DNA from: Salpingoeca rosetta
Lineage: Eukaryota; Protista; Choanoflagellata
DNA length: 64,000 bases
Reading direction: 5' to 3'
Assembly (NCBI GenBank): GCA_033442325.1
Contig: JAWQFM010000022.1
Location: 446,025-510,024, forward strand
This document shows, piece after piece, positions 3,101 to 60,712 of the stretch. The notes beneath the pieces are model-generated. The model had not been told where the DNA came from, ran no database searches, and saw only the letters and a list, made by a program, of their open reading frames with translations. A program made the translations under genes and the position numbers. Positions within the stretch are counted from its first letter, which is position 1. Each line of letters opens with the position of its first letter.

Positions 3101-3252
3101 TGTCTACGAGAAGCGCACGCTAGCTGCTGCACCCTGCGCTCTCCATCAGCCCATTCTCCAGGTGTGACACACACACACTCACACACACTCACACACACAC
3201 ACACACTCACACACACACACGCAACACACGCACACACACATACACACACACG

Positions 3253-3321
<69 letters not shown>

Positions 3322-8917: not shown

Positions 8918-8951
<34 letters not shown>

Positions 8952-30771: not shown

Positions 30772-30831
<60 letters not shown>

Positions 30832-32276
30832 GGCCGTCTCCGTCGCTTTCAGCGCCAATGGCAGCAAGAATCGCGTCCACAGCTTCTTCTTCATCCTCTG
30901 CCAGGCCATCCCCACCACCACCACCATGTGTGGGCTGGTGAGTCCAAAGTGTGCCACCCGGCTCCTGCTGCTCCTGCTCCTGCTCTTCCTCGTTTCCATC
31001 GCCACCTTCGCCACCACCACTGTGGCGACCCTTTCCTTCCCTCTTCCCTCCCTCTTCTTCCACCTCCTCTTCTGTTTCTCCTTCAGTTCCTTGTTCTTCT
31101 CCTCCTTGTTCTTCTTGTTCTTGTTCTTCTTGTTCTTGCTCTTCCCCGCCCACGTCTTCCTCCTCCCATTCATCTTCTTGCTCTTCCTCCTCCTCCGCCT
31201 CCCACATGTCCACCTGTGCTGCCTTGAGCAGGTGGTGCCGTGCTGCGGCAAGGTTCATGTTGCACACCGCGTGCACCAGGCCAAGTGCCGCCTGCACAAA
31301 CCGCCGATCCGCGCCCCGCACGTGCGGCTGGTTCAGCTCTTGCATCAGGCGACGCACGCACACCTCCTTCGACACGTTGGGCGCCTGCTGCGCTTGCACG
31401 TGATAGCGTGCGGTGACAAGCGTGCTGGAGACAACGGGCCCGAGGTCCGGGTGTGTGTCCAGAAGCGCAGACAGACACACGAGCGCAATGACGTCGTCAG
31501 GCGCACAGGAGACGGAAAACTCAAAGCACGCCTTTGCCGTTCGCAGGTGGCCGCCGCTCCAGCGATGGATCCCAGTCGTGCTCATCTGTTGGTGGTGGTG
31601 GCGTTGTAAGTGGTGTTGTTGTAGATGAGCATGTGTACCGTGTGAAAAAAGGCAAATCAGCAGGGTGGAGTGGACAAGGAGATTGTGATGCATCCGGCAA
31701 GCTACAGCAATGTGTGAGATATTTCACGCACAGCCGTGTACGACATACACCCTCATTCAAGTAATACACACAGGTTCACATACACGCACGCACGCACGCA
31801 TGCGCGCGCGCCCCTTGCACACGTACATTGACAGCGGCTGCAAGGTTTTCCATCTGCGTGCGCTTGGTCAGCTCTGCACGAAGCAGGTCGTGCGTGACCC
31901 GGGATTCTTGGAGCTGGCGACGGAGGACGCTGATCTGCTTGTTGGTGTCGCAGTCGCAGGAGAGGTGATGGCGATGCCGGTGACGCTGCGGGTGCCGCTG
32001 CTGCGCCGTCTTCAGGCCAACTTTGCACTCCTTGCCGCCGGTGGGCGACTTGGCACAACCCATGTCATCGGCGAGCATGCGACGCCCCTGGCGTTTCGCT
32101 TCCGCCTTTTTCTCCTTGTATTCAGCGCACCACGGGTCCAGCGCAACCTCCCCTGCCGGTTTACTGTTCTTGGGCACTTGCGGGTATTCGTCCAATGCGC
32201 CTGGCGTGCGCTGGCCACCACCACTGCGGGCTCCAGCGTCGCCCGCTCTTCTTCGTGCAGCATGGGCTGCCTGCAT
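28636..32276 (-). CDS. Sel1-like repeat protein with long acidic (poly-E/poly-D) and Lys-rich low-complexity region; 5' end uncertain
   Basis: Sel1 repeats AFAWYRQAADRHLPQALVNLGNCHATGTG, AVECYRQAAQRGHAAGAFNLAMCYRHGRG, TIKWLTRGAEGGHAASQYELG, GMVWLKRAAEQDHIKA (~29300-30110). Upstream exon 32276-31827 splices in phase 0 to 31585. Confidence 0.75.
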
Positions 32277-39500: not shown

Positions 39501-41542
39501 TGTGCATATGTGCATGTGCACACGTGTGTGTGTGCGTGTGTGTGCCAGGATGCGTTGTGCATGTGTGTGTTGCACAGTTGCGTCCTTTCCCCCTACCTCA
39601 ACACATACACAACCTTCCAACCACTGCCACTCACAGCCACTGCAACTCATAACCACCACCACCACAACCACCCATTGCCACCAATCATCCAAACCATGCA
39701 GAGGTGCTGCGCGGAGGAGAGGTGACGCGGGAGGCGGACGTGTACAGCTTCGCCATCACCGTGTACGAGATCTACAGCCGGCAGGACCCGTTCGCAGAGG
39801 AGGACGCATCGGAGGTGCTCCGCCAGATCGCCGCGCGCCAGGTGCCGGCAAAGCGACCCGACATCCCAGACTCGTGCCCCGTCATGCTGGCTGAGCTTGC
39901 GCGGCGGTGCTGGTCCGAGGAGCCCAAGTTCCGGCCAACGTTCGACCAGGTGGACGCGCAGCTGAGCGAGCTCAACATCAGCAAGGTGGGCGCAAGCCTC
40001 ATCCAGCAGAAGCAGGACGCGCTGAAGAAGGCCACGGTGCTGCACGACGTGTTCCCGCCGCACATTGCCAAGATGCTGGAGGAGGGCAAGAAGGTGCACC
40101 CGGAGCACAAGGACGACGTGACCATCTTCTTCTCCGACATTGTGGGCTTCACCAACATCAGCGCGCAGCTGACGCCGGCGGCGGTGTCGGACATGCTGGA
40201 CCGACTGTACTCTGCCTTTGACGAGCTGACGGAGAAGCACGGCGTGTTCAAGGTGGAGACCATTGGCGACGCGTACATGGCGGCAACAAACCTTGTTGAG
40301 CCGCAGCACGACCACGCGCTCCGCATTGCGCAGTTTGCGGAGGACGCCATCAAGGCGGCGCAGTCGACGTTCATTGACATGGAGCGGCCGGAGCTCGGGT
40401 GCGTGAACATCCGCGTTGGGTTCCACTGCGGCCCTGTTGTGGCCAACGTTGTTGGGCGGCGCAACCCGCGGTACTGCCTGTTTGGGGACACGGTGAACAC
40501 GGCGTCGCGCATGGAGAGCTCGAGCGAGCGCAACAAGATCCACGTGTCGACGTCTGCGGGGGACCGCGTGCGGAGCCAGGCGCCGTGGGTGAAGCTTGAG
40601 TCGCGCGGGGTGCAGAACATCAAGGGCAAGGGCGAGATGCTGACATACTGGCTGGTGAGCACGAAGAAGGAAGCAAGCGGCCCCAGCGAGCTGACGACGG
40701 TGCAAGAGGCCGAGGAACCAGAGCTCGAAGTTGCAGAGCAGCCGCCCATGACATCACCCCGCTCCCTCACTTGGGCTGATCAGCAATCTGCGCCATCAGG
40801 CAACGCGGGCTCAAACCAAGATATTTCAACTGTTGGAAAACTTGTGCGGACCATCAGCGGCACCCTCTCCGGCAAGCGGCGAAACAGCGGCGACAAACCA
40901 AAACGCAACAACAGCCTGACGAGGCTCTTCGGGCACCGCAGCACCCCCGTGCAGCCGGCCGAATCCGACACAGATACGGACGTGGAATCGCAGACAGCGC
41001 GGTCGTCTATTGACTTTCGCCCACACCTCAGCGCCAGCAGCGGCAGCAGCACCTCTCAAGCGCAACAAATGACCACACCCGCTGTCCCTGGCACGGTCCA
41101 GCTTGAGGGTGGCATTGTCAGTGCCACCGACGTTGACCAGTATAACGGCGACGACGACGACGACGATGACGACCGTGATGATTATTGGGGTAGCGGAGGC
41201 GAGCTGCTGCAACAGGATGCACGGCTGCTGGGCGATTCACCATCACCAGTGGTCCTCAGCAACATGTCATCACCACAGCCTGTCCGGCGCAGCAACCTAC
41301 GCAACGAGGAGCCACCAACACACAAGACGCCCACCAAGTTGAACCAGGCCGCAAACCCCACGCCCACCTCAGCCACGGCCACCACTCGGCGCAAGAAGCT
41401 GCCAATCGCTGCTGGCTTGTCCTCGCGCCACCAGGGTGCGACGGCCAACAACAGCATGTCTGCAGTGAGCAGCACGGCCAACACAAGCCGTCAAAGTAAC
41501 GATGACACGCCGAACTCGCTTGCCTCACCGCTGCTCGTGTGA
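34773..41542 (+). CDS. Receptor guanylate cyclase with signal peptide, periplasmic-binding-protein (Phosphonate-bd/PBP2-like) ectodomain, Cys-rich linker, TM, kinase domain and class III cyclase
   Basis: Signal peptide LLLCLVLLVATILPAHA. GGVIFAKADSGIDSFNDL...VVDAVLEGKAEAG...STPVYPNW. TM FVPIFLVIALVFIAILSYVIIVIM. Kinase GRGAFG/AIK/HGDLKAKN/DFG/GTPYWMAPE. Cyclase TIFFSDIVGFT, KVETIGDAYM, PRYCLFGDTVNTASRMES (Glu and Cys specify GTP). Confidence 0.9.
36439..36511. repeat. (GAT)n trinucleotide microsatellite just inside an intron donor
   Basis: Follows GAG|GTGACGCT donor at ~36431. Confidence 0.9.
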
Positions 41543-42197: not shown

Positions 42198-45100
42198 TCA
42201 CAATTCATCCTCGGGAAGCACGTTGAGGTAGCCTTCTGCAATCGTGTCGGAGTCAGCAGCGTCGCTGTCACCATCATCATCATCATCGTCGCCGGGAAGG
42301 CCAGGTTGCGTGACCCACGCCAGGCTGGACCCGAAGAGGTCCTCGATTGTCTCGTACACCTCGTCATCAGGCATGCCCACCGTGGGGTCAACCGACTCTG
42401 TATCGGCGTAGAGCGGGTTCTCCAGCGCACGCGAGCTGGCGCTGTTTGCGGTGGCGCTGACACTGCTGCTCGCGTTGGTCGCTGCTTTGCGGGCGTTGCT
42501 GCTGCGTCGACCGGTTTTGGGGTCTGACCCGGCAACGACCGCGGCGTCCACGTCCGAAGCAGCGGAGAAACGGCGCGTGAACCCGGGCACAAGTGAGCCA
42601 CGATGTGACACAACAACGTCACGTGGCGGGCCAGCCCTGTTGGTGTCCGCGCTGGATGGCCGGCGGCGGCGTAGCTCCTCCAGATCATAGTGCATGCTGG
42701 GCGCAATGGAGGGCGTGCTTGGATGCCGTGAGCGGCGGCCTTTCATCATGCCCACATCCAGGCTCGTGTCACTGTTGTTGCTCGACAGGCGCGACCCGCG
42801 TCGAAAGTTGAGCAGCGAGAAGCCAGAGCTGCGCCGGCGCTTCTCTTGCTTCCCGCCCGTCTCGCTGTCGTGCGCAGGCGAAGAAGGGCGCCGTGGCGGT
42901 GCAACGGAGGACGATGATGCTCGCGATGGCCGCTCCCCGCTGTCGCGACTGGCTGGGCGGGAGGCATCGAACATGCCAGCAAAGCCTGCTGGTGTGGACA
43001 TCCCTCCCAAGCTGCTCGTGCTGGTGTGTGTGGTGCCCATGGCGTTCTTGTCCGGCATATCTTTGGTTGAAGCCACCTTCCACCCCGCTTGCTGATTGCC
43101 ATCTTCCTCCGCATCGCCGACGCTTCTCGCCCTTTTTTTCTGCTTCTTCTTCTTCTTCAGCTTCTTCGTCTTGGTGGTGTTCTTTGAAGGTGGCAAGGCG
43201 TCGAGCTGCTGCGTGTCCTGTGGTTGCTGCTGCTGGCGGTGGTTCTTCTTCGCTTGCGGTTTCTTGTGTGTTGATGCTGTTCGAGGCTTGCGTTTCCGTC
43301 TTGCCCGCCGGCGCAGCGCAGCCAGCGCAATGAGGAGAATCACGATCAGAACAGAGTTGACAAGCGACACGAGCAGCCACACGTTGGCTGTGAGGTCAGC
43401 AGCGATACCCGCGCTGGCATCGCTGTTGCCGCCACCGCCCATGCTGCTGGTGGTTGTGGTTGTGGTCGTGGTAGACGAAGAGGTTGTCGGTGGCTCGGTT
43501 GTCGTGGTCGTCGTTGTGGTTGTCGGTGGGCGCGTGGTGTATGTGTTCTGCAAAAGCGCCGTCAAGTTGCGCACGCGCAGCTGTTGCTGGCCCAGCTTGC
43601 TCTGCACCTGCTGCAGATCCAGCGTGAGGTGCTCGTTCTCCCGCACCAGGTCATCCAGTGCGAGCACGGCTTGGTCAACCTTCATCCTCAGCGATTCGCT
43701 GCGCTGCACCGTGATGGGCGGAGCAAACTCAGCAGGGTCAGCAAAAGTGACAGCTGTCTCAGCCAGCTCAGCCACCATTGCCAGTACCGCAGTTGCGTTG
43801 ATGGCTGAGCTGTTGTTCCCACTCCTGCTGTGTGGACCGTCAGCACCGGGCACCCAAACACTGCGACGCGTGCGATGGCGCCAGCCTGGTATCGAGTCAC
43901 GATCTCCCATGTCAAGTGCGCGACGCCTGCGTGCTGGCGGCGGCAGAGACGATGGCATGGCCGAAGACACCATCGTCGTTGTGGCTGTGGCTGTGGCTGT
44001 GGCTGTAGGGGTATGATGCGTGCCATTTGCAGACATGTGCGTGCCATTTGCAGGCATGTGCGTGCTGTTGCCATGTGCTGTTGTTGTCGTTGGTGTTGTT
44101 GGCGGTGGCGGCACATCCACGTGGAAGCGCGAGAGCAAGTGCAAGCACGATGGCTGCAGCGGTGCACCGGAGAAGGACGCGTCAATGAGCGTGACGTTGG
44201 CTGCACGGTCGTGAGCCAAGAGGCTGGAGCCATTGCTGACGTGCGCCAGAGTTGTGCTGTCGTCAAAGCGCTGCCACTGGTCTGGGTGCTGGAGAAAGTT
44301 TGCCACCTTTGTCACGAGCGCGTCCGTGTGCGTGTGGGCGTCGGTGGGCGCACCCGCTTCGCCACTTGCACAGTAGAGCCACGCCACCGTCTCGCATGCC
44401 CCGGCTGTGCAGGGCACGTTGGGTGTGACGGCGAGTACAAACTCTGCCCCAAACACCTGGTTTTCCAAGTATGCAAGCGAGGTCTCGAGTTGCTGGTGCT
44501 CTGCTGCGGCCCGGACCTCCTCCGTCGCCAGCGCGTGTGTCAGGTTGGCCGCCTCTGCCTCGAGTGACACGCCCAGAGCTGCGTCGCTCGCGTTCAGGTG
44601 CCGCTCCAACGCCAACACGCGCCCATGAAGGTGCGCGTCCGATGCGCTCAGGGTGCTCACACTCGCGTTCCACGCTTCCGTGAGGAGTGCATCTTGGCTG
44701 GTGAGGCTGGCCCGGGCACCGGCCAAGTGCGAAGCCAGGCTCGCTTCCGCATCCACAGCACGCGTGTGCTCTGCTGCAGCTTGACTGGACGCAACCGAGA
44801 GCTGCTGGTGCGCGCGCGTGTCCTCTGCTGTCACAGCGGCCGCCAGGCTTGACTCCGCGCTCTGCGCTGACGCGTGCTGCTGCGAACCAACCGCACTCAG
44901 CTCGCCCTCATCCGCAACTGCAGAGGACACAACTGATGACAGCTGTGATGACAGCGCTGCCGTGTCCTGCTCAGCTTGCCGCACGTGCTGGCTAATGGCG
45001 GCGCTGTGAGTCGATTCCGTCTCCACTGTGGACACATCTACTGCATGCAGGCTTTGGCTCAGCTCACTGGCCGTTGACAAGGCACGCGCACGCTCCGAAG

Positions 45101-48100
45101 AGAGCGAAGACGCGAGTCCGGCACTGGCATCCACGCCGCGGCTGTGCTCAGAGGCGATGGCAGCGTCCATCGTGTTATGGTTCTGCTGTGCCGTCGACGC
45201 TTCAGCCGAAATGTCACGCTGCAGATCCTGTGCGGTGGCGGTGCGGGCATTGCCGATGCTGCTGGTCTCTTGGCTGAGCTCACTCGTGCGCCGGGAGCGG
45301 CGGGCTGTCTCGGCAGACAACGATGATTTCACGTCTGCGCGTGCGTTGGCGCTGCGTGACTGCTCGCTGGCAATTCGCGTTTGCAGAGAAGTTTCAGCTG
45401 CCGCTGCCTGCTGCTGCTGCGTGGCCACGGACGTTGACAGCACCGTGACCTTCTCGTGTGCTCTGCTCTGCTCCTTCCTGACAAGGGACGACAGGACAGC
45501 CTCCGCCGCACGGTTTGAAGCGCCAACACCGCTCACGCGTGCCTCCAGCGACTGCTCCGACGACAAGGCTGCAAGTCTGTCCGCGGCAATGGCACGGCTG
45601 ACACTTTTCTCACGCTCAATGGCAGCAGATTCTGCAGAGGACAGGGACGTGACAAGCCCAAAGTTTGCCACGACCTTGCCTTGTTGGATGTCGGAGATGG
45701 TTTGCTGCATCTGGTGCGCCTGTGCTGCGTCCCTCTGCGCCTCTGCAGATATGGCAGAGGCCAGGCTGCCCTCCGCTGCCATGGCGGTGGCGGTGTTCTG
45801 TGACAGGTGCGACAGAAGCGACGAGGAGGTGCTGGTGACCCGCTGCTCCTGCTGTGACATGCTGGCTGCAAGGCTGGCGTGATGGGCGAGCGTGCTCGTC
45901 TCCAGTCCAGACAGGGAGGTGCTTAGGTCGCTGCGTGCGTCCGCAGCTCGTGTTGCTTCACTGGTAATCGCCTGTGACAGCCCGCTGTGCACATCGATGG
46001 CGCGGGAATGCTCAGCACCGACTGCCTGCAACAGGCTGGCTGCAGCCACCTGCTGTCTTGCTGCTTCCGTGCTGATTGTTTCCGCGAGCTCGTCCTCCTC
46101 ACGCGTTGTGTTGGAGACAAGCACCGCCTGCTTCTGGGACAGCTGGGCAATGACAGAGGCAATCGACGCATGCGCGCGGCGGCCGGTCGACACAGCAGCA
46201 CTCAGCTCACTGCCAATGCTCGCTGCAGCTTGTGCTGCACGATCTTCCTCTGAGAGCATGCTTGCAAGCAAGTTCGCGCGCGTGGCGTGTGCCCTTGCCG
46301 CTTCGCTGCTCAGCTGCACCCCAATGGCTGCTTGACTGGCGTTGGCTGCGCTTGCGTGGGAGCGAATGGCATCTGCGAGCGACGACGACGATGAACGAAG
46401 GCCTGCCTCAGCTGCCACTGCGCGTGACGTCTCCGACTGCATGGAGGCTTCCAGCACGCTGACGGCGGACGCTTCTCGTGCCGTCTCCTGCGACAGGAGC
46501 GATGCGAGGGCGGCGCGCCTCTGCGTCGCTGTTGAGGAGATTGTGTCGATAACCTGTTCCAGCGAAGCCTCACGCGACTGCGCAACAGTCACCCGGTTGC
46601 GTGCACGGCGCTGCTGCGTGCTCGCCTGCGAACTGAGTTTGGACTCTGCGTCGAGAGCCAATGAGGTCTCCACGTCCAGTTCCATCGACAGCACCAGGCG
46701 CTGCTGGCGTATGCGGTTGCTGCCCGTCTGCACGGCGGCATCGAGCGCCGATTCAGCGGCAGCTAGTTCCGCTTGTGCGTCTGTCAGCAGTGTTTCCAGC
46801 GACTGGATGACAAACAGCTCCACATCGTCGCCTTTGGGGCCCACGGGACCAACATCGCCCTGTGCTCCTTTGTTGCCGGTTTCGCCCTTGATGCCCTGTG
46901 CCCCTTGCACGCCTTGCGGCCCAGGATCGCCCACAGGACCTGGCACAGTGCAGCGTGTACGTATACGTATGTGTGTGTGTATTTGTGAGTGTGAGTGTGA
47001 GTGTGTGTGTGTGAGTGTGAGTGTTTGTGTGTGTGTGTGTGTGTGAGTGTGAGAGAGAGAGTGTGTGTGGAAAAGTGAGATGGAAGCAATTGTCCTGACC
47101 ACGATGATGAAGGTTGTTTTGGTGTGGATGCGACCATGTGTGTGTAAGTGCGATACATGTGTGGTATCTCTCATTCACGCACACACACAAACACACACAC
47201 ACGCACACATACACACACGCACACACACACACACACACACACTCTCTCTCTCTGCGCATGGTACCTCGAATTCCCTGTGGTCCTGGGTCGCCCTGTGGCC
47301 CCTGTTCGCCCTGTGGGCCTTGAGGCCCCTGCGGCCCCTGCGGCCCTTGAGGACCAGGATCGCCTGTCAAACAAGCCGCGTTGTGATCGTTGTTGTGAAT
47401 ATGGAGCCATGAAGGACAGCAGCAGTGATGGCATGTGTATCACACATACTCATGTGCAAATGAAGGAAAATGCGCGCCGATGTGTCAATCACACATACAT
47501 ACACCTGACACACACACATACATACACCTGAGACACACATATACATACACCTGACATACACACACACACACACACACAAGCACACACATACACACACCTG
47601 ACACACACACACACCTGACATACACACACCTTGTTCACCCTGCGGCCCCTGTGGTCCGGCATCGCCTTGGTCACCCTGGGCGCCCTGTGGCCCCTGTTCT
47701 CCCTGTGGCCCTTGATCCCCCTGCTCACCCTTGATCCCCTGAGGCCCCTGGGGTCCGGGTGCACCAGCGGGGCCCTGGTCACCCTGTACGCCTTGATCGC
47801 CCTTGGGGCCCTGCGGCCCTGGGTCGCCTGCAACCCCCTGTTGCCCCTGTGGTCCCTGTTCTCCCTGTGGCCCCTGCGGCCCTGGTGCGCCCACCTCCCC
47901 CTTTGCACCAGGTGCGCCTTGCTCGCCCACGTCGCCTTTGTCGCCCTGCGGTCCCGGTGCACCGTCATCGCCGTTCACTCCAGGCAGCCCTTGTGGCCCC
48001 TGTGGCCCCTGTGCACCCGCATCCCCCGTTGGGCCCTTTGCTCCTCTATTTCCTTGTGGGCCTTGAGGCGCTGTTGACATTTTTGGTTGCATCAGGGGCA

Positions 48101-49105
48101 TGGTTGAAGGGAGGCAAGGGGACAGGCAGGACATGTTGCAAGTTGTGAGGTGGTGATGGAGGTGGGGTTGTTTGTTGTCACAGCAGTGCGTGGGGCCCTT
48201 ACACGCGTGTGTGAGAGCGCACAGGTGGCAAGCATACGAACAATTGCATCCAAGCAATGAATCGAAGGCCACAAACCTGCAACGCATTGCCCGCCGTCCC
48301 AATAGTAGTTTGTCGAGCAGCCTGATAATGGAATGACAGTTGTGAATGTGTGCGTGTGCGTGTGTGTGTGCGCGTGCGTGTGTGTGTGTGTGTGTGTGTG
48401 CGTGTGCGTAAGTCCGTGTGCTTGTATTTACAGGACGAGGCAGAAAAGATAAAAAACGAAGCAGGCAAACGTGAAAATGTGCAGGCTCGTGCTGAAAGAC
48501 ATGGCGACGTGCAGACAGGCGCATGCATGTACATGTAAAATTAACGATCACTTACGGCACACGCGCCCGAATGAGTACTCGGAGTTGCCTTGGCACTCGA
48601 CGTCGCACACAAAGAACGCAAACCTGGTTGTGCGTGTGCGTTCGTGCATGCGTGTGTGCGCGTGTGCGTGCGTGTGTGTGTGTGTGTGTGAGTGTGCGTC
48701 ATGGGAGTTGACTCAAGTGTTAGTCTTGGCCGGAAGTTGGCATGCAAAGCCACAGATGAAGCAGGCATGCAAAGCCACACACAGTCACACAGAGTCACAC
48801 ACACACACACACGCACACACGCACACGCACGCACGCACGCACACACACACACACAGAGCCACACAGTCAGCCCAGATGATGGCCAGACCTGCGGTCAGTG
48901 GAGCTGCTGTCGTATGCGGAGGAGATGCCGCGAATGGCCTTGCGGATGCCGGGGTCATAGTTGAGCGTGCCTTTCAGACTATTGATGTATGACGTCCAGC
49001 TGCAAGGTATTTTGGAGAGAGGAAAGCGAATGTGAGAGGAGGCAGTGGAGTAGGGCGCAGTGAAATGCTCATGTGAAATAAGCACGTTTGATGAACAAGA
49101 ACGTG

Positions 49106-49142
<37 letters not shown>

Positions 49143-50148
49143 GTGCACAAAAGTACAAACACATACACACAAAAGTACAAACACAGAAAACATGTCCGCA
49201 CCTGCAGCTACTTTGGTACGTGATGCCAGAGTTGAGCTTTCCGCAGGAAATGGACCAGACTCGATCCTGTCAGCGACAAGTAGGAAGAATGGGAACGTGA
49301 GGGAGGCAGTGCGGGTGGTCTTGGTTGTGCAACGCATTCCTTGAGATCAGTATGTTATATGACAAGACCTTCCAGTCAAAAGGCACCTCGTTTGTGTTGC
49401 TGTGGACGCTTGCAAGTCCCGTCACAAAGGAGTCAACTGGCATAAAAGCAACGCAAGCAAGCAGAAGCAAACACATGATGAGGTTCGGTGAGGCATGATC
49501 CGGAGGACACACACGTGAGGGGGGGGGGGGAGTTGGAGAGAGGGACTGTCATGCAAATGTAGTGCAAACAAATGACGCAGCTGCGACTGTACGTGTGCAT
49601 GACTATGGCATAATAACTGAGCCACGCCCACAACATCGCACCCTTCTTCCCAGACCCACACAGAACGCCACCCCCTTTTCACACTAACCTGGGCATGTGT
49701 ATGAGAAGGCTTGCTTGTAGTTGTTGAGAGAAGCCTCTGCTGTGTGCTTGAAGGACAAGCTTGCAGCTTCGCAGTGGAAGGCCCATTGTCGGTCGTGATT
49801 ACTGTTGCTGTACACGGAGTAGACGCCTGTCAAAATGGTGTCCCCACCACACTCGAACGCCAGGTCGTTGTCAAAGTCGTTGAGATACCCCGTGAAGTCG
49901 GAGGGTTGTGCCGTTATTCGATGGATGCCGCAAGCAAGTACCAGAGCCATTAGCAGCCACACGATGCTGCGTCTGCTGCAGCATGTTCTGCAGCCTCGTG
50001 TTGTTGCTTGTAATCGTGTGTGCTGCTGATGTTGTTGTTGTTGTTGCTGTTGATGATGTGAGCGTGTTTTGTCTTCGTCCCGCACCACCGTCACCACAAC
50101 GCACGGCGCCTCTGGGTGCCGGTGCGCGTGTTTGTGTTGCACTGCCAT
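42198..50148 (-). CDS. Dermatopontin-domain / collagen / Ser-Ala coiled-coil type I membrane protein, paralogue A
   Basis: Signal-like [23 protein letters not shown] repeats [13 protein letters not shown]...HDRQWAFHC, ...[16 protein letters not shown]...DRRFAFFVC. Collagen exons 48070-47630, 47363-47265, 46939-. 804-aa Ala/Ser stalk; RRRR/RTRR; Thr run; [25 protein letters not shown]; tail NPLY. Start codon uncertain. Confidence 0.85.
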
Positions 50149-50587
50149 CACTGGCGCAACATGGGCAGAGCCGTGTACTTGAAGGAAGCAAGACCGGGCG
50201 GATGTAGGGAAGAAGGACAACGCGTGTGTGATTGTTCTGGGGCCGTGGAGTGCAGGCATCGAACCAAACACCACCACCACACACAAACCAAACACGCAAA
50301 CAAACAAACAAGAACACAGAAGACAGTCGGAGAAGAAGCGACGCGAAATGGCATGTTTGCGGAATATTCACAAATATCTTCAACCAAAAATCCGCAATTC
50401 AGGCGTTCGAGGCTGCAGCGAGTGTTTGGTGGCGAGCGAGTGTTTGAAATGGTGTGAGACGCTGCGAGCGCAGAGACAACAACCAACAGTGGTGGTGGTT
50501 GGTGGTGTTGTTGTCGATGGTGTTGGTGATGATGAAGCATAAGCCATGCCATGGCAAGAAACGAGCGAGAGGATCAATACATAAGCG

Positions 50588-51992
50588 CTACGCACTGAGG
50601 CTGCTGGTGTCATCCGTGACTTCAAGAGACAGCTTGGTGTTGCTTGGACTGGACACCTCGTCTGCATGGCCTTCGTCCTCTTGTTGCTCTGTTGATGACA
50701 ACACCAGCAGGTGAGGGAGGGGGGAGAGGAAGGGAGTACATGTACGAACCCATGCTCGCACGCAGGCACACAGATAGACAGACACACATACACACACGCA
50801 CGCACACCCGAACACACACACGAACACACATACACACGCACACACACAACACACACGCACACACACACACGCGCGCAGAGCTTGCATCGCTGTCCCTACC
50901 TGCGCCCTCGTCGCCGGCTTCTTCTGTAGTCTCTGCTGGCGTTGCCTCTGGCTCTTGTTTACCCTCCTCCTCCTCCTCCTCCTCCTCCTCCTTGTTCACT
51001 TCATCTCCTGCAGCCTGTGTATCAGCTTCCTTGCCAGCATCAGCCTCCTCCCGTGGTGTGGGCGTCTTTGCCGTGGCTTCTTCCTCCCCACCTTGCTCGC
51101 CAACTTCCCCCTCTTTGTCCTCCTTGTCCTTCTTTACCTCCTTGTCCTCCGCCTTTTCATCCTTTGCTTCCGTCTGCCCTTCCTGCTCGCCTTTGTCTGG
51201 TGTCGGTGTCACATCACCATCACGCTCGCCATGACGCTCAGCATCGCCATCTTCGTCATCGGCCACCTCTGCGTCGCCGCTTTCGCCCTGTTGTGTGTCC
51301 GGCACCTCCGGTGTGGTGGTGGTCACCGTCGACACTGCGCTGTCAGCGACTGCATCATCAGGCGAGGGCGCTTCCTCTGACTGCTGCTGCTGCTCGGCAG
51401 CACGTTCTTCTTCGTCCTTGACTGCATTGGTTTCTTCTTCTTCTCCTTGGTGTTCTGCTGCCGCCGCTGGTCCTTCGGTTGTGTCGTCACCCGTGTCTGC
51501 TGCTGTCGCTGCGTCGTCTTCTGTCGTCTGTTGCTGTTGCTGCTCCTCCTCCGCAGCCTTCACGTCTTCCTGGTCGTGGCCCTCGGGCAGAGGGCACAGC
51601 GGGCACTGTGCAAACAGGGAGACAGTGCTTGGGAACTGCTGTGTGACACTGGAGTACGTGAACACGGCCGTGGCCAACGGCAGGCCCTCGTAGGCCTTGA
51701 GCGCCTCGCGTCTGGCTGCATCGTCGGCCTCGCGCTGCTGTTGGATACGCTGCCGCTCTGCTTCGGCCTCCTGCGCCCTGCGCCTTTGCGCTTCTGCTTC
51801 CTCCGCCTGCTTCTTGGCGATGTAGCTGTTGATCTCGTCCTGCTTGGCCTGCTCCCTGTCACGCGCGTCGCATGCCTGGCGCAGCAGCGAGCTGATGTGG
51901 CGGATTGGGTCCTCGGGCTGGTACTTGGCGACGTCGGCCATGGCACGCACCAGCATGTCGCCGACCGTCTCTCGGATAAACGCGGCTTCCAT
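50588..51992 (-). CDS. Dpy-30 motif (dimerisation/docking) protein with coiled coil and long acidic tail; DYDC/radial-spoke-like
   Basis: MEAAFIRETVGDMLVRAMADVAKYQPEDPIRHISSLL matches the Dpy-30 consensus (YL..tV...L..GL..l...rP.DPi.yLa..L). E-rich C-terminus; last exon ends at 50588. Confidence 0.75.
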
Positions 51993-52333
51993 CCCTGCAG
52001 TTGCCAAATCAAATCTGGCCAAGAGGTGGGCACGAGGCAAGACAAATAGACAGCACGTGGGATGCAGCCGAGAAAGATGACGCAACGAGCAAGCATGCAT
52101 GCATGGAAACGGGCGGTGACATGAGCCAAAGTGAACAACAAAACAAGAGTATGCCAAAGCATGTATGCAAACAAAACAAACAAGAAGGGCAAACTTGCCA
52201 AGCAAGAGTCAACTCAAACAAAGCGCACTTGTTTGTCGTCAATGTCACGCACACATACACGTGCACACGAGTCGGCTGGTGTGCGGGAGACAAAACAGGG
52301 ACGAACACCACCACCACCACCACCACCACCACC

Positions 52334-52364
<31 letters not shown>

Positions 52365-52526
52365 CCAACACCAACACCAAGCGCACCTTGTTGTTGTTCC
52401 GTCTTTGAAGAAGAAGGGGAGGGCGCGTTTGGCGTTGTGAAGATGGAAAATTGAGGCAAAACGTTCGTCAATTGTCGGCTGTGCCAGCAGCCAGACGGGA
52501 GGACAAGCAAGCAAGAAGCAAGCGAG

Positions 52527-53224
52527 ATGCTGCTGGTGGGTGTGTGCTCTTGTGTGTGTGTGCGTGTGTGTATGCTTTTGTATGTGTATGCTCTTGTGTG
52601 TGTGTGTGTATGCTCTTGTGTGTGTGTGCTTGTGCGGGTGTGTGTATGAGACTCAAGTGTGCATTGTGCCTCATTACCCACTGATGATGTATGTCCTGCA
52701 CCTTGCCCTGTTTCGTCGTGCCAATTGTGCAGGCAAGACTTGTACTGGTGCTGGTCGCCAGTCACTGCTTGTGCCCTGCTGTGGCGCAACCATCGCCCCC
52801 GAGTGGCTGGACAGACTACATCAACGAATACGACGAGGAACTGGACTTTACTTGCGCTCCAGGCAACGTCCTCTCTGGTCTCCTCAGCTACCACGAGTAA
52901 GCGCAGACAGAGGAGGCGTGTGTCTGTGTCTGTGTCTGTGTTGTGTTGTGTTTGTGTTGTGTTGTGTTGTGTTATTGCTGTGGTTGATGTTACCCACTTT
53001 TTGACTGCCAAACGAACACAACACACACACATGCACACACGCACATACACACACACACACGCACCCACGCGCGCACTTTCACACCCATCCACAGCAACAA
53101 TAAAGAGGATCGGCGGTGGGCATTCACGTGCAAAGAGGCGGAGCTGTTTGAGCATTGGGAGAGCGGATGGATCAACAACTTTGACGCGCCTGCAAGCATC
53201 ACCTGCCCAAGTGCGTGCTCGCGC

Positions 53225-53256
<32 letters not shown>

Positions 53257-53838
53257 GAGCGCGCGCGCCTGTGAAATCCGCGCTGAATTGTCATGAACTT
53301 CGCCTGTCTTTGCCTGCGAATGTTTCAGCCAAACTTGTCTCTCATTGTTGCTCACTCGTTGCTTACTTCTTGTGCCACAGGCGGCTTTGCACTCACCGGC
53401 CTACGAAGCTACCACGACTCAAACAATGAGGTGAGCCTATGGAAGTCCAAGCCGTTCACCTTACACGCGTGTACCCATAGGATCCACGCACACATACACA
53501 CACAGTGCATACATATACATACAGTGTACACATACAGATGCATGCACAGACAGAGTGTGCGTACGCCTTGTTTTGCTTGCAAGCAGCCGCTCACTGTCTC
53601 ACCCTGATGCGTGTGCTTGTTTGCGCTTACAGGACCGGAGATCGCAGGCCCGTTGCCAGCGGTTCACCAGCCCGCTCGCATATGAGACATCGTGCGCGTG
53701 GACGAACTACATCAACACCTTTGATGACCCCCTCTCTTGGTCCGTTTCTTCCACCCGCGTCATTCGTGGGTTTGGCTCCTACCACAGCAACAACAAGTAT
53801 GTCACATGCGCTTGCGCTGTGTGTGTGTATGTGTGTGT

Positions 53839-53929
<91 letters not shown>

Positions 53930-54712
53930 CTGCATATTCATGTGCAAGTTTGCACCGTACCGCCTCACTCCACCCCGCCACTGCCGTCACACCACCACCC
54001 CGCCACTGCCGTCACACCACCACCCCGCCACTGCCGTCACACCACCACCCCGCCACTGCCGTCACACCACCACCCCGCCACTGCCGTCACACCACCACCC
54101 CGCCACTGCCGTCACACCACCACCCCGCCACTGCCGTCACACCACCACCCCGCCACTGCCGTCACACCACCACCCCGCCACTGCCGTCACAATGCAGCGA
54201 GGATCGACGGTTCAAATTCCTGCACTGCGGCGTTTCCTGCTTCCAACCGGCCGTGCAGTCCGATGCACAATGCGGTGAGTACCCATCCATCCCCCTCATA
54301 TCCTCTTCTTCGGCACCTTGCCATCCAAACACTCATGTTGTCGTTGTTGTTGTTGTTGTTGTTGTCGTCGTTGTTGTTGTTGTTGTCGTTGTTGTCGTTG
54401 TTATCGTGCAACACGAGTGTTTGGTGTGGTGATACGCTGACTCAAGTCCCCTCGCTGCGTGCATTGCTGCTGTGCTTTTGTGTCGCGCTCATGCCTTCTT
54501 CCCGTCTCCTGCCGTCTTGATCACTCACTGCCTGTAATCAGAATGCACCTCCGACTACTTCAAGAACCACGGAACGTGCCAGCAAAGTGAGTGAATGTGT
54601 GAGTGAGAGTGTGAGTATGTGAGGTTGGACATGTTATGTGCTTGTGTGTGATATGATAACTTGTACGTCGCACTTGTGTCACTATGCATCCTGTCACTGC
54701 GTTCCCCCCACC

Positions 54713-54790
<78 letters not shown>

Positions 54791-57700
54791 ACACACAGTT
54801 CCAATTGGTGCACCCGGTCCAAAGGGGTTCACGGGCGATACCGGCGCGAAGGGTCCACAGGGTCCACAGGGAGCACGCGGCCCGCAAGGCGCTCCAGGTA
54901 CTTGCATGCACACATGCACGCACACATGTGTTGAGCTTTTGATGTGTGTGTGTGTATTCATGTGTTTGTACGTACAAGCATGTGGAAAACCTGTACACGT
55001 GTGTTTCCAAGTGTGTTGGGGGGGGGGAATCTCGCTTGCTAGCTCGCTTGCTTGCTTGTTTGGTGTTTGGAGTCTGCCACTCCTACCTTATGCATATCCG
55101 ACATCTTTTAACATCCTTCACGCCATTGCCACAACCATCTTCCCCTGCTCCCTGCACGCGGCACGCTGTCACCGTCCAAAGGCCAGGACGGTGCTGTTGG
55201 CGCCAAAGGGATCAAGGGCGACATGGGCGCACCAGGACCAGCCGGTCCGCAGGGCGATCAAGGTGCACGCGGTGACGCGCCATGTCGCACCTGCACACTG
55301 ACTGCATGCTTTGTCTGTTTGCATTTGACAGGGAGGGCGGACGGGGTTGCAAGGTTTCTGTTGTGACATGACTATTGGTGTTCATGCACGACCTCTGCCC
55401 AACATGAGCTTGCATACATACACACTCACTCACTCACTCACTCACTCACTCACTCACTCACTCACTCACTCACTCACTCACTCACTCACTCACACAATCG
55501 TCCATGTCTGTTCACAGGTTCTCCTGGCCCCATTGGACCTCAGGGGCCTGTGGGGGTGCCTGGCCTTCAAGGCGTCAAGGGACCACAGGGGCTGCCGGGG
55601 CCACAGGGCGACCAGGGCATCAAAGGTGCGGCGCCATCGTGCTCTCGTGTGCACGTGCTCATTCTGTTTGCTTTCCGTTTTTTTTTTTCTTTGTTCATTC
55701 TGACCAAAACAGTGACGGCTACAGTGCCAGCATGTTCGTGTCCGCAGTTGCTCGATGCCTTTCCTTGCTGCACGTGGCGTTTCACCCTTTTGCATATCGC
55801 CCCTCTCCCTCTCTATTGTTCTCTTTCTTTCTCTCCCGTTCTCTTTCCCTGCTGTCTTCAAGCTCTTCACGCCCTTTGCTGCCTCTTTGCGTTGTGTGTT
55901 GTCCTTTCTCATGACCGTTTATCGTTTGACCAATTTACTCAGGTGTTCAAGGTGATCCCGGCCCACAGGGCAGCCCAGGTCCCAGTGGCATCCAGGGAGA
56001 TAAGGGTGCGTGAATGTGTATGTGCGTGCATGAGTGTGATTGTGTGTATTTGTGGGCGTGAAGATGAACATGTGCTTGTGTGCGCGTGCGTACGCAGCAG
56101 CTTCACTTTGCTCCCATATGCTGAACATCACTTCGCTGAAGCACAACCCAAGCGTCCAATCTCTTGTTCTCATCATGCCCTCTCCCCACCTTCCACTGTC
56201 CCTCTCCACCCAGGCCCTGTGGGCGATATTGGGTTGCCCGGGCCACAAGGAATTCCCGGCCCAAAAGGACCAACAGGTGAATGCTCCCGCTGAATTTGCA
56301 ACTGGATGCAAGGAACCCTTACACACACACACGCACACACACACACACGCACACACACACACACACGCACACACACACACACACGCACTCACTCACTCAC
56401 ACACACACACACACACACTCACAAACTCACTCACACACACTCACTCACTCACTCACTCACTCACGCACACATACACATACACTCACTCACACACACACAC
56501 ATACACATACACTCACTCACACACACACACATACACACACATACACATACACTCACTCACACACACACACACACACACACATACACTCACTCACACTCAC
56601 TCACACAACACGTGGCACCGCCAACGACAGGCCCTGTTGGCGTGCGTGGATTGAAAGGGCCAATGGGCGACCCTGGGCCCATTGGCGTACAAGGCGATGT
56701 TGGTGCACAAGGCCCCCAGGGAATCAAAGGGCTGCAAGGGTCACAGGGGCCACAGGGCCTAAAAGGAGCGCAGGGCCCACAAGGCGATCCCGGCCTGCAG
56801 GGTGTCCAGGGCGACAAAGGCACAACAGGTGACCAAGGTCCTGTGGGTCCAAAGGGCCCTCGTGGCGAAGATATCAACCCAGCGCTGATCCAGCACCTGC
56901 AGAGCAACATCTCAATCGAAGCGTCACAGACCAGCGACGCTGCCGAATCCTTGAATGCGGACATATCCTCGCGCATCGTCAACACGTCGCTCACCACAGA
57001 CGAGCTCATGCGCAGCGCCATCTCGCACGAGACGCAGCGCCAGGCCGCCGCCCGCTCCATGCTGAGTCTGCAGATTTCAACAGACCAGGCCGCCCTGTCC
57101 AGTGAAGTGCAGCGCGCCACGCAGGCGGAGTCCTCCCTCTCCGTGTCCGTGGCCGGGCTGAGCGGCGCCGTGGTGGGCGGTGTCTCCTCTGTATCGCAGA
57201 TGATCAGCGCAATGGACAGCGGTGCCGTCGCGCGCGAGGCGTCCCTGCACGTGCGCGCCAGCAACGAGCGCATCAGGGCAGACAGCGCGCACGCCTCGCT
57301 AGAATCGCAACTCCAACAGCAGGCCAGCGCGGTGGCGGCTGCAGACGCACGTGCGCGCAGCACAGAGGACATGCTTGCAAGCAGCCTGTCGTTGCAGGTG
57401 ACATCGAGCATCAGCGGTGAGGCCACCACTGCCCAGAACGTGTCATCCCTTGCAGCCCTGGCCCATGCCCGCCAGCTGTCACTGCAATCGGACATTTCCT
57501 CCGCTACACAGGAGGCCGGGCACCAGGAGTCATCCCTGCAGCGCCAGGCAGAGTCGCTCGTGTCCGCACTCAGCACGGAGGAGACACGGCGTGTGCAGGC
57601 CTCGTCCTCCCTGGCATCCAGCATACTCGCACGACGATCAGGTGCCATGGCGACAGAGTCATCGCTAGCAGCAGCCATCAGCGCACAGCGCACGTCCACG

Positions 57701-60700
57701 GGCACCAGCATCTCCTCCCTCACCACTGCCCTCTCCTCTGCCGCATCCCTTGGACAGCAGGCAGACGACAGCCTGGCGTCGCTGCTGTCTGCAACAGCAA
57801 ACGCCGCCGTGTCCCGGGAAACGAGTCTGCAGCACACGCTCGACAGCGCCGTGTCCCTTGCCTCGTCTGCAGAGGCGACACTTGATCGCGAGCTCAGCAT
57901 CGACGTGTCGCGTGCCGTGTCTGCAGAGGCGTCCATATCCACGGCCGTGCAGGACCGCATCTCCACTGCAAAGGCGGAAGAGGCTGCGCTCGACAGCGCG
58001 CTGCAGTCACTGCATGATGTTGTGCGCGTGTCCAACGCGAACGTCTCCCTGCAGCTGCAGGCGGCCCAGTCCCGTGCTGTGCGCGAGGAAAGTCGCCTGT
58101 CCGCTGCCGTTGTCAGCGAAGCCAATCGGGCCGAGCACGCCCGTGCGGACGTGGCATCCTCCCTCTCCAGCGAGCACGTCCGCGCGCTGTCGGCCGTATC
58201 GTCGCTCAACGCTGCCGGGCATGACGCAATGACCTCTGCGCAGTCATCTGAAGCGCACGTGAGCAGTGCCATCACAGCAGAGGCCGGCCGGGCGCAATCG
58301 CGAGAGGAAATCGTGAGCGCAGCCATCAGCGCGCACACTGTCTCCCGCCTCTCTGCACAGGGCGTGCTGTCATCGTCCATTACCGCTGCTAGCAGCGCGG
58401 CAAGGGTAAATGCTTCGCAGTTGCGCGCAAACGTTGCAGCGCTCTCCTCCACACTGCACCAGCAGCACAGCCAGCTTGAGACCTCGTTTGCGATCGTTGC
58501 CTCTGACACGTCAACCGCCCTCAGCAGCCTGGAGGTGTTTCGCACTGCAGTCGACACCAGCGCGGTGTCCAGGGCGACGAGCATTGCTGCCGACATCTCA
58601 GCAGAGCAGAGCAGGTCGTCAGCGCAGCACGCGTCGCTCAACTCGCAGCTGTTAACAGCCATCGCTCGGGCAGACAGTGCGCAGGCAGCGTTGAGGGTCG
58701 AGGAGCAGGGTGCGGCTTCCAGTGCCAGCACCGCCGCTTCGTCGCTGGCGGTGGCAGCAGAGCAGGAGCGGGCGCGCGCGGTAAACCGGACACTGGAGCT
58801 GAACAGCCAAGTGTTGCAGGAGCAGAGCCGCGTGCAAGTTGCGCATGCGAGTGTTGCTGTCTCGCTGGCGCAGGTGTCATCGGAAGCAAGCGCGCTCGCC
58901 GCCACGCACGGCAACTTTGTGTCCTCTGAACAGAGCAGAGGCGCCGACACCCGCGCGTCCATCGCCACAGCGCTGTCTCGCGACACACAAACGCTACACG
59001 CCGTGGACGCGTCGCTGGAGACATTCATCTCGGACGCGTCGCAGCAGCTCATCACAGCGGATCAGCAGCTGTCCACTGAGCTCTCCGGTGTGCAGCAGAC
59101 GCGGTTGGCGGCCGACGCTGCGCTGCGTGAGCACCTAACGTTCACGCACAGCACGCTGTCGACCATGGTGGCGGTTGAAGCGGACAAGGCGGTTTCGCGG
59201 GAGCAGCGGGTGCTGGGGCGTCACGCCGCTGTCGCACAGGAGCTCAAGACAACGACGGTGAAGGCAATCATCGCCAACGATGTTGCCTGCACGCTCGAGA
59301 CGTGCAATTCACAGAAGATTGTCATGTGTCCCAGCGCGGCCCACCCAAACGCTGGTGCAACGACAGGCCTGGTGCAGGATCTGCTACTGGCGTTTCAGGC
59401 CAACCCGGAACGCTGGGTGCTCGACACATCGCGACAGCCAAAGCCGTCCACAATCGGCTTACAGGACCTTCGCATTCCGCGCGCATACATTCGCACGTCG
59501 CGGCAGGATGACGCATGCCTGGAGTTTGACGTGGATGTGGGCAGCGAGGCGGCGTACACGGCCGACTACACCGCGCCGGCACAGCAGCAGCAGCAGCAGC
59601 AAAGACGGCGGCGGAGGCGGAGTGTTGGAGATGTGCGGGCGCCTGGCACTGACAGCACTGGTGGTGCTGATGGCGCTGGTGGTGCTGATGGCGCTTCATC
59701 TAGTGGCATGGAATACAAGAACTCGAACCACCAGCAACAGTTGCGGGACCAACTATCACAGCAGGAGCAGCAACAGTCTGTCGCGCGTTCGCGCCGGGTT
59801 GCCTTTGTGTCTGACGATGACTTGGCAGAGTGGACGCGCCAGCTCATGATCACGGCTGGTGCGTCGCCCACTGTCGATGCCACTGGCAGGAAGTTGGTTG
59901 TTTTTGTACCTGCAGCCGTGGACGACGCCTTGCAACAGGGCGGAACCAGCAACGGCGACGATGATGTGCTTTCCGTGTCTGCACAACTGAGTTCGCTTGA
60001 CAAGCAGGTGGCTGCGGTGCGTCAGCACACGCACACGCTGCTTGCGGACACCATGCGCGCAATGGCCGACTTCAACACGACGTGGCAGGCGCTGCGTGAA
60101 GCGGAGGCCACGATTGAGTCGCGGCTCACCACCACAGCCACCACGACCACGACCACGACAACGACCACCACAACCGCAACCACGACGACGACAACAACAA
60201 CGACAACAACGAGCAGTGCACCGGACAGAGCGGGCGCGAGCACGTCCGTATTTGGCTCTGCGCCGCCGCTGCTGGTTTATGTTGCGATTGGCAATGCTGG
60301 CGCCATCATCATCGCCGTCATCGTCCTGATTGTTGTGCGGCGGCGGTACGCCAGCCAGCCCAAGGTGCACGTGGCCAAGAAGCGCCAACCCCCCAACAAG
60401 CACTTGTCCACCTCGTCCCTTCCTGCAACAGCAACAACATCCCCGTGGCGCCATTCGTTTGTTGGTGCCGGCGCTGGCGTCCGCAATTCCTTCAGCGGGG
60501 ACATGCCTGCTCTCCGCCGCCACTCCTCCTCGTCCACGACCATCATCGACGAGATGTTGGGGGCGCGCACGGTGACGAACCCGCTGTTCCACACGGCGAT
60601 TGAGGAAGCAGACGAGGCGGAGGGTGCGAGTCAGTACTACCAGCAGGTGGAGCCTGTGAAGGAAGATACAGACTCCGACGTGTTTGATCTCGACGCCATC

Positions 60701-60712
60701 GCCGGAGAGTGA
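52527..60712 (+). CDS. Dermatopontin-domain / collagen / Ser-Ala coiled-coil type I membrane protein, paralogue B
   Basis: MLL|[18 protein letters not shown] signal. DERM repeats [16 protein letters not shown]...[16 protein letters not shown]...[18 protein letters not shown]...[10 protein letters not shown]. Collagen exons 54799-54897, 55182-55262, 55518-55625, 55943-56005, 56214-56276, 56631-. 805-aa stalk; RRRRRR/RSRR; Thr run; [25 protein letters not shown]; tail NPLF. Confidence 0.87.
53971..54190. repeat. 25-bp minisatellite (CACCCCGCCACTGCCGTCACACCAC) x ~8.8, intronic
   Basis: Perfect tandem copies ending 7 nt before the exon start (AATGCAG acceptor). Confidence 0.95.

Follow-up and report, generated by a model that had tools for sequence, protein, structure and literature searches.

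What do two oppositely oriented genes that each join a dermatopontin (DERM) domain to collagen encode, and does the encoded molecule belong to any known kind of cell-surface protein? This question is raised by a 64,000-nucleotide stretch of the genome of the choanoflagellate Salpingoeca rosetta (contig JAWQFM010000022.1, C22:446025-510024; hereafter the window), which carries one such gene on the minus strand (A) and another on the plus strand (B); feature coordinates below are window positions unless C22 is given. An earlier note, made from the letters of the window, had described the two as a pair of undescribed transmembrane fibre proteins. Our analysis, which adds a third paralogue (C), makes it rather probable that all three are type I membrane proteins with a DERM-EGF head, a 72-triplet collagen, a helical rod of ∼805 residues, a 4-Cys domain, a mucin-like, cleavable linker, a stalk and a tail with tyrosine motifs, forming a trimeric fibril of ∼180 nm whose head binds glycans or matrix.

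We built the models of A and B by hand from DNA read base by base, with two large open frames as anchors (42198-47174 minus for A, 56306-60712 plus for B). Gene A (42198-50148, minus) has 9 exons (50148-49689, 49436-49387, 49266-49202, 48999-48889, 48623-48556, 48321-48277, 48070-47630, 47363-47265 and 46939-42198) and encodes 2026 residues from its first in-frame ATG. Gene B (52691-60712, plus) has 12 (52691-52896, 53095-53210, 53381-53430, 53633-53796, 54198-54274, 54542-54586, 54799-54897, 55182-55262, 55518-55625, 55943-56005, 56214-56276 and 56631-60712) and encodes 1717 residues from the ATG at 52691. All introns are GT-AG, both coding sequences close in frame and the Gly-X-Y periodicity is kept across every collagen intron. 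Both genes were found at the positions and in the orientations given by the earlier note, and in both we recovered the domain order it had listed, namely signal, DERM, Cys module, collagen, rod, 4-Cys domain, basic sites, coil, Thr run, transmembrane helix and NPxY/F tail.

Splicing was followed in three RNA sequencing (RNA-seq) runs of the same species, deposited as raw reads in 2026 and mapped to positions 47200-53199 only. Spliced reads cover five junctions of A (49387/49266, 49202/48999, 48556/48321, 48277/48070 and 47630/47363), the fourth of which links the first collagen exon with the exon of the EGF-like Cys module, and one of B (52896/53095), whose junctions are visible only up to the end of the mapped stretch at 53199. 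The skipped pieces have GT..AG ends on the gene strand, and the strand of the reads agrees with each gene. Two further junctions of A (49689/49436 and 48889/48623) stayed under the reporting threshold because read depth was only 1-17. The exons of the DERM and Cys modules are joined to those of the collagen in transcripts, as the earlier note had supposed; the models describe genuine genes that are transcribed and spliced accordingly, with the domain content and order given above. Over the three samples the depths of A and B co-vary (low, high, middle), and that of the Dpy-30 gene between them does not follow, a hint of co-regulation from n=3 only. A gene-prediction artefact, or the capture of DERM exons from another gene, is excluded by the RNA junctions together with a single open reading frame (ORF) in C, described below. 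A bacterial or viral origin of the stretch is likewise excluded by its spliceosomal introns, poly(A) and eukaryotic neighbours.

Both members of the supposed pair are thus real genes, but the family is a three-gene cluster. Paralogue C (C22:532623-540773; 2556 residues as modelled) lies 23 kb past the window end and was read from the stretch C22:530025-548024. One uninterrupted ORF of 691 residues (positions 2599-4671 of that stretch) contains a poly-Q run, a complete DERM domain, the EGF-like module and collagen, scoring 132.6 bits for DERM (profile positions 1-152) and 84.8 bits for Collagen, where the Pfam cut-offs are 28.3 bits (PF14704) and 27.2 bits (PF01391), respectively. This ORF establishes the linkage of DERM to collagen independently of any splicing. 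Two short introns follow, and then an open frame of 1931 codons, of which the model uses 1861 (stretch positions 5162-10749), with the rod, the 4-Cys domain, an RRRR site, the coil, a Thr run, the transmembrane helix and a long Tyr-rich tail. Unlike in A and B, the head of C (DERM, EGF-like module and most of the collagen) is without introns. C also has ∼330 extra N-terminal residues, which include the poly-Q run and in which no Fic domain was matched in Pfam at E ≤ 0.1. Just downstream of C the assembly has a run of N (C22:∼541225-542775).

A and B align collinearly (26% identity over 975 residues, gapped, E 1e-24) and have a 50-nt and a 45-nt exon in common, from which we conclude that they are of common descent. 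To place the trio within the genome we scanned all 55.4 Mb (68 contigs) for DERM and collagen, obtaining 89 DERM exon matches at ∼20 loci (those of A at C22:495711-495905 and 494912-495034) and collagen at five main loci, along with a few weak isolated matches. Only the C22 trio combines the two; every other DERM match lies more than ∼19 kb from any collagen match. DERM itself is strongly expanded in this genome, with tandem clusters at C24:600-610k, C19:933-938k, C1:519-531k, C4:144-155k and 2293-2303k, C12:359-364k and C23:1166-1170k. A HMMER search of 1.84 billion representative proteins with the C head and the first 60 collagen residues returned the combination, among its best 150 matches, only in P0002, a 230-residue fragment from Tara Oceans marine metagenome contigs that is 51% identical to C, and a second, word-based search with the head gave P0002 as its only find. 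The P0002 contig is genomic, with 59% G+C and a CA-rich intron like those of A and B, and the family therefore occurs in at least one uncultured relative. A scan of JGI metagenomes with an alignment of the C and P0002 heads gave no confirmed locus. In the data reached, which comprise protein databases that exclude choanoflagellate transcriptomes, the predicted DERM-collagen-rod family looks narrow.

The head consists of three DERM repeats. In A it spans 48556-49905 (minus, exons 1-5) and scores 54.1 bits for PF14704 on exon 1 alone, and in B it spans 52790-54274 (plus, exons 1-5), with 31.7 bits on exon 2, 48.1 bits on exon 4 and 19.5 bits on exon 1. The gathering score is therefore exceeded in single exons of A (exon 1) and B (exons 2 and 4), as well as in C, which places all three proteins in the DERM family, marked by three DR-x-W/F-x-F repeats and conserved Cys. 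They are not dermatopontin proper, which is a small, secreted, single-domain protein, since here DERM is followed by an EGF-like module, collagen, a rod, a transmembrane helix and a tail. The EGF-like Cys module is a 45-nt exon in A (48277-48321, minus; CxC..Y.W.GG.C), with RNA joints on both sides, and is matched by the 45-nt exon 6 of B (54542-54586, plus), the pattern common to A and B being CxC...G[YF]...C. An AlphaFold2 model of the C head, built with 17 aligned DERM domains, reached a predicted local distance difference test (pLDDT) score of 94.5 and is all-beta with three similar units, its EGF-like part forming small hairpins with weak EGF matches. Foldseek returned no match for the DERM head model in the PDB at E ≤ 0.001, and an exhaustive structure aligner found as its best match the beta-prism domain of a Vip3 toxin (Z 7.0, root mean square deviation 4.0 Å, 124 residues), with jacalin-type lectins at Z 2-3 and the EGF domain of factor Xa at Z 2. 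The modelled fold would be compatible with carbohydrate binding, and lectin activity is only suggested.

The collagen comprises 72 uninterrupted Gly-X-Y triplets in A (46824-48070, minus; exons 7, 8 and the start of 9, with introns 7 and 8, matching PF01391), 72 in B (54799-56872, plus; exons 7-12 with their introns) and 73 in C, so the 216 collagen residues of the earlier note are exact for A and B. These long unbroken runs, with PF01391 scores above the cut-off (48 bits in an exon of B, 84.8 bits in the ORF of C), place all three within the collagen family. The triplets are rich in Gly-Pro-Gln, with Pro at X in 26-29 and Gln at Y in 25-40 of the 72, and the net charge of the collagen is −15 in A, +1 in B and −17 in C. 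A homotrimer prediction from three copies of A residues 462-711 gave an interface score (ipSAE) of 0.03, which weighs neither way.

Over nearly the whole collagen, A and C have undergone gene conversion. The tract (46858-48035, minus; 1.18 kb) runs across collagen exons and introns alike and is the only part of the two genes that aligns at the DNA level, with exons 96-98% identical and introns ∼93% identical outside microsatellite indels; within a few bases of the tract on both flanks identity drops to 38-49%. B stands outside the exchange. RNA reads with C-type bases map onto A within the tract, demonstrating that C is expressed too.

Between the last triplet and the first Cys of the following domain lies the rod, 804 residues long in A (44412-46823, minus), 805 in B (56873-59287, plus) and 806 in C, in exact agreement with the ∼805 helical residues of the earlier note. 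The A rod is Ala/Ser/Leu-rich, with 2 Pro and ∼44.7 copies of an 18-residue repeat, and that of B has the same repeat, in phase with A throughout at a constant offset of 1. Overall the rods are rich in Ala, Ser, Leu, Glu, Gln and Arg and contain 1-3 Pro and 18-27 Gly each. In the hydrophobicity spectrum a peak at 3.60 residues ranks top in A and C and third in B, other strong peaks being 18/8, 18/3 and 18/4; the periodicity is therefore 18/5 instead of the 3.5 residues (7/2) of the canonical heptad. The unit has the rough consensus E-a-a-R-A-x-s-A-E-A-S-L-s-s-a-L-S-A, with apolar residues spaced 4-3-4-3-4. Eighteen residues in five turns equal a heptad plus a hendecad, an arrangement for which coiled-coil theory gives nearly straight, unsupercoiled helices.

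Although ungapped identity between the rods is only 16-18%, the best ungapped offsets agree modulo 18 from each 90-residue window to the next, the sole exception being a one-residue slip in C near the middle. Repeats of equal index resemble each other a little more than they do the rest (z 2-4, a weak signal). As read from the sequences, the three rods are collinear, with essentially no net insertions or deletions and with their phase kept. Tandem repeats usually drift in copy number, and the retention of both length and phase therefore points to selection on rod length and register. No relative of the rod was detected in Pfam, NCBIfam, PDB sequences or the ESM Atlas (all Atlas scores <0.9). 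A word-indexed protein search with the A rod and C-terminal part gave 8000 low-complexity candidates, none significant, and a search of the S. rosetta genome with the A rod or the A 4-Cys domain returned only A, the paralogues being too divergent for the filter.

The 4-Cys domain that follows the rod (44109-44411 minus in A, where it reads C-x4-C-x7-C ... C and ends F.VDV; 59288-59542 plus in B) likewise has no relative in Pfam, NCBIfam, PDB sequences or the ESM Atlas (Atlas scores <0.9), and an AlphaFold2 model from three sequences was unusable (pLDDT 47). Next comes a linker, Thr/Pro/His-rich in A (43704-44108, minus), with multibasic sites at RRRR (residue 1450) and RTRR (residue 1469), and then a short membrane-proximal heptad coil and a poly-Thr stalk (43389-43703, minus). 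Linker, short coil and poly-Thr run occupy 59543-60238 (plus) in B, where the sites are RRRRRR (residue 1349) and RSRR (residue 1410). In A, B and C the multibasic sites fall at the same place, between the 4-Cys domain and the membrane-proximal coil, and only this short segment appears heptad-like by eye. The transmembrane helix of A (residues 1633-1655; 43314-43382, minus; Kyte-Doolittle 2.92) precedes RRRARRKRK and that of B (60266-60337, plus; Kyte-Doolittle 2.88) precedes RRR. With an N-terminal signal-like segment and a sole transmembrane helix near the C terminus, followed by a basic cluster, the layout is the type I arrangement proposed earlier.

The tails differ greatly. That of A (42201-43313, minus) has 371 residues with NPLY, YETI, YLNV and an acidic end, and no Pfam match; that of B (60338-60709, plus) has 124 residues with NPLF and an acidic end; and that of C, ∼570 residues long, has YENG and nine tandem 30-residue units, each with YAKP and YDKA. 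The NPxY/F and acidic Tyr motifs are plausible sorting or phosphotyrosine-signalling sites. The choanoflagellate host is an organism rich in tyrosine kinases.

Whether the architecture is new depends on what has been seen of these genes before. Linden & King (bioRxiv 10.1101/2021.10.08.463732) surveyed choanoflagellate collagens, and the five collagen loci of our genome scan match in number the five S. rosetta collagens of their Fig. S2B (PTSG_00277, 08167, 08172, 08174 and 11817). From the adjacency of the identifiers and the count of loci, the trio is probably PTSG_08167, PTSG_08172 and PTSG_08174. The main text of that survey deals with VWFA, SRCR and fibrinogen partners and with the type II protein ChCL, and never mentions dermatopontin; the legend of its Fig. 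S1 lists 'Dermatopontin', 'FIDO' and 'Tropomyosin' among collagen partner domains. Matriano et al. 2021 described S. rosetta DERM/EGF genes as candidate horizontal transfers expressed in thecate cells, and their supplements do not list PTSG_08167, 08172 or 08174. Fairclough et al. 2013 (Additional file 7) annotated PTSG_08172 as collagen only and placed it in a cluster 'up in attached cells', its expression being 6-12 fragments per kilobase per million (FPKM) for thecate cells, 7.9 for swimmers, 5-7 for rosettes and 1.8 for chain colonies. Our literature search found no paper whose text mentions any of the three identifiers. The word 'undescribed' in the earlier note therefore holds for the architecture, which no paper found describes, but less well for its parts, the genes being probably annotated already and dermatopontin standing in a figure legend. 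In the literature searched, the genes and the bare domain pairing had been seen before; not so the overall architecture, the rod of 18-residue repeats, the matched lengths, the conversion tract or any function.

How might such chains assemble? Long Gly-X-Y runs fold only as three-chain helices, and the molecule is therefore almost certainly a trimer, the three chains associating as collagen requires. In collectins and other collagens a nucleating coiled coil stands C-terminal to the collagen. The rod, in the same position here, could serve as the trimerization nucleus, with folding zipping toward the N-terminal head. The product would be a stiff, extended fibril of 72 × 3 × 0.29 nm + 805 × 0.15 nm, that is, ∼62 + 121 = 183 nm (∼180 nm), with a head for binding glycans or matrix held well beyond the cell coat. 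A proprotein convertase may cut the linker at its furin-type multibasic sites, after which the fibre would either be shed into extracellular matrix or theca or be held non-covalently on a membrane stub, and the stub may signal or be sorted via its NPxY and phosphotyrosine motifs. Furin shedding at a juxtamembrane linker is known from collagens XIII, XXIII and XXV, ectodysplasin and gliomedin.

A first question is the composition of the trimer. Mixed A/B/C trimers are a live possibility because of the exact length match, the clustering of the genes and the pairing of acidic (A, C) with neutral (B) collagens, and further arguments come from the head-to-head arrangement of two of the three genes, the homogenized collagen of A and C and the suggested co-variation in expression. 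Against mixing stand the very different heads, 4-Cys domains and tails and the extra N-terminal region of C, and on balance we regard mixed trimers as possible but doubtful. The rival that survives best, a serious possibility if still short of probable, is that A, B and C assemble separately as homotrimers, each with a head specificity and tail signalling of its own, and that the equal lengths reflect a shared spatial ruler such as a fixed gap or coat thickness. The same divergence of heads, 4-Cys domains and tails speaks for this reading, as do the failure of the A rod and 4-Cys domain to retrieve anything but A from its own genome, the spread of the tails from 124 residues in B through 371 in A to ∼570, with nine 30-residue Tyr repeats, in C, and the N-terminal extension that C alone carries. 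Homotrimers sit less easily with lengths and repeat phases that agree within two residues, with clustered genes, with the homogenization of the A and C collagens and with the strong acidity of those two collagens, which should disfavour self-trimers relative to mixing with neutral B, though none of these points is decisive. The strongest version of mixing, in which A, B and C, encoded by a gene cluster as are C1q and collagen IV, form an obligatory heterotrimer, length-matched by selection and gene conversion, that contributes a defined ∼180-nm fibril to the architecture of the choanoflagellate cell (in the flagellar vane, in links of collar or microvilli or in tethers of the theca), with three-headed DERM glycan binding and phosphotyrosine tails that report to the cell, and represents a pre-animal 'defence collagen' receptor of reversed topology, we consider unlikely.

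A second rival concerns the fate of the fibre, not its composition. The proteins may be matrix precursors instead of receptors, their anchor serving for delivery only until a convertase frees the DERM-collagen-rod fibre for theca, stalk or colony matrix, with the NPxY tail reserved for sorting or endocytosis of the stub. The conservation of multibasic linker sites in all three proteins fits this, as do the furin shedding of animal membrane collagens and the nature of dermatopontin itself, which belongs to the matrix and binds both collagen and proteoglycans. The attached/thecate-up cluster (Fairclough et al. 2013, Additional file 7) moreover includes PTSG_08172, a probable member of the trio, but the thecate bias of this gene is less than two-fold. 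Linker cleavage is itself a prediction from sequence, and the long, motif-rich tails, especially that of C, look like more than sorting signals; we hold the matrix-precursor account only tentatively. Least likely, indeed improbable, is a rod that folds back into antiparallel helical bundles or is partly disordered, leaving the molecule far shorter than 180 nm: the low-complexity Ala/Ser-rich composition, the Glu at some core positions, the lack of any known family, structure or profile match and a trimer prediction (ipSAE 0.03) that gave no answer would allow it, but the 18-residue phase runs unbroken over ∼800 residues without loop-like breaks, each rod has only 1-3 Pro and 18-27 Gly, the regular turn segments that would be needed are not seen and residue-exact conservation of length fits a rod better than a coil.

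Several observations weigh against the trimeric, membrane-anchored fibril that we favour. We infer its trimeric state, ∼180-nm length, adhesive or lectin role, cleavage and surface location. In the 18-residue repeat, Glu is frequent at positions that should form the core. Pro is found in the Y position of only 9-12 of 72 triplets, so hydroxyproline can contribute little, and the thermal stability of the triple helix is unproven. The fold matches of the head lie at Z <8, a range common for the tool. Expression is low, both for A and B in the RNA-seq reads (depth 1-17) and for the likely PTSG_08172, whose values across all cell types are only 2-12 FPKM. In the C model no signal peptide could be recognized, and the start codons of A and B are uncertain. 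In both A and B there is an N-terminal hydrophobic signal ending in A followed by QPS. The B start may be at 52527, the choice of the earlier note, which needs a 9-nt first exon, or at 52691; from either the same hydrophobic core, ending AVA before QPS, results. For A, the poly(A) site of the upstream Dpy-30 gene (∼50163, with oligo-T loose ends) lies 15 nt from the first in-frame ATG (50148), so the promoter and true start of A should be inside or downstream of 50148-50170 and, with the ATG at 50148 doubtful, the protein may begin at the alternative Met at 49950, which would keep the signal-like segment intact. An out-of-frame ATG lies upstream of this Met, at ∼49984.

Known systems offer several partial likenesses. 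Like class A scavenger receptors and collectin-12 (SR-AI, MARCO, SCARA5 and CL-P1), which are trimeric 'defence collagens', the trio would run from an anchor through a helical coiled coil and collagen to a head facing outward. Those proteins are however type II with a C-terminal head, whereas the trio, examined for a type II layout, proved to be type I. Their head is an SRCR domain or C-type lectin and that of the trio is DERM, with no SRCR or C-type lectin match in Pfam; and the coiled coil of class A scavenger receptors consists of ∼100-160 residues of heptads, the ∼805-residue rod of 18-residue repeats being five times longer. Beyond collagen, no sequence relation to these receptors was detected. 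Collagens XIII, XVII, XXIII and XXV, ectodysplasin-A and gliomedin resemble the trio, as predicted from sequence, in being single-pass membrane collagens with a juxtamembrane coiled coil and a furin-type site, but they are type II, with interrupted collagen, and have neither a DERM head nor a long rod. With dermatopontin and the Limulus hemagglutinin/amebocyte aggregation factor the trio shares a full three-repeat DERM; those are secreted proteins of ∼20 kDa with no other domain, while here DERM caps a membrane protein of 1717-2556 residues.

Closer in phylogeny is ChCL (Linden & King 2021), like the trio a choanoflagellate transmembrane protein with collagen and a lectin-like head. ChCL differs in being type II, with ∼50 residues of collagen, a ∼700-residue non-collagenous region and a C-terminal ConA-like domain, and in being widespread in choanoflagellates, where the trio is known from one genome and one metagenome fragment. 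For a possible A/B/C assembly the analogy is with C1q A/B/C and the head-to-head collagen IV pairs, which likewise have clustered or divergent paralogous genes and length-matched chains; the chains of C1q and collagen IV form heterotrimers, as A, B and C may, and the heads and trimerization domains are unrelated. At the domain level the predicted proteins belong to the Pfam Collagen and DERM families. In how it would work the trio is most like class A scavenger receptors, collectin-12 and the membrane collagens, yet it is a member of none of them.

Collagenous surface and matrix proteins are central to animal multicellularity, and choanoflagellates are the nearest relatives that animals have among living organisms. 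Physically the trio is laid out like animal scavenger receptors and membrane collagens, with the opposite chain polarity, a DERM head and an undescribed rod of 18-residue repeats, and a design shared in opposite polarity must have arisen at least twice or been re-engineered. The near-exact 72 triplets and ∼805 rod residues, in chains only about a quarter identical, are a clear sign that the length of the fibre matters. All three proteins are concrete candidates for the unidentified fibrils of collar, vane, glycocalyx or theca, in a species that can be edited and tagged.

The gene between A and B (50163-52437, minus) encodes an acidic protein with a Dpy-30 motif, as the earlier note had it (26 bits for PF05186, cut-off 22 bits). 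In the RNA-seq data it is ∼100 times more expressed than A and B, with its poly(A) at ∼50163 and its 5′ end at ∼52433-52437. This 5′ end and the first reads on the strand of B fall within ∼150 bp (52433-52600), which suggests a bidirectional promoter shared by the Dpy-30 gene and B. Many RNA reads break at 52612 within a GT microsatellite, their continuation unplaced. Within the Dpy-30 transcript many reads go back 24 nt at 50289-50312 and differ at 50295 and 50296, as if a 24-nt tandem or microsatellite differed in length between assembly and sequenced strain, and ∼19% of reads have C>G at 51077.

Long microsatellites of (CA)n/(TG)n or CACT type occur in nearly every intron of A and B (for example at 47030-47260, 47500-47625, 53800-53930, 54715-54795 and 56320-56600); in B, moreover, a tandem repeat of ∼30 nt occupies 53960-54190 in one intron, and a run of (GTT)n lies at 54330-54400 in another. 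The neighbouring genes include neither a prolyl hydroxylase nor a lysyl oxidase. Convergent on the 3′ end of A is a receptor-type guanylate cyclase with a kinase-homology domain (39704-41542, plus), and farther away lie genes for a Sel1-repeat protein (28853-31693, minus), a tyrosine-phosphatase-family protein (24559-25875, minus) and a giant attractin-like EGF/CUB/Kelch/PA14 protein (3660-11438, plus).

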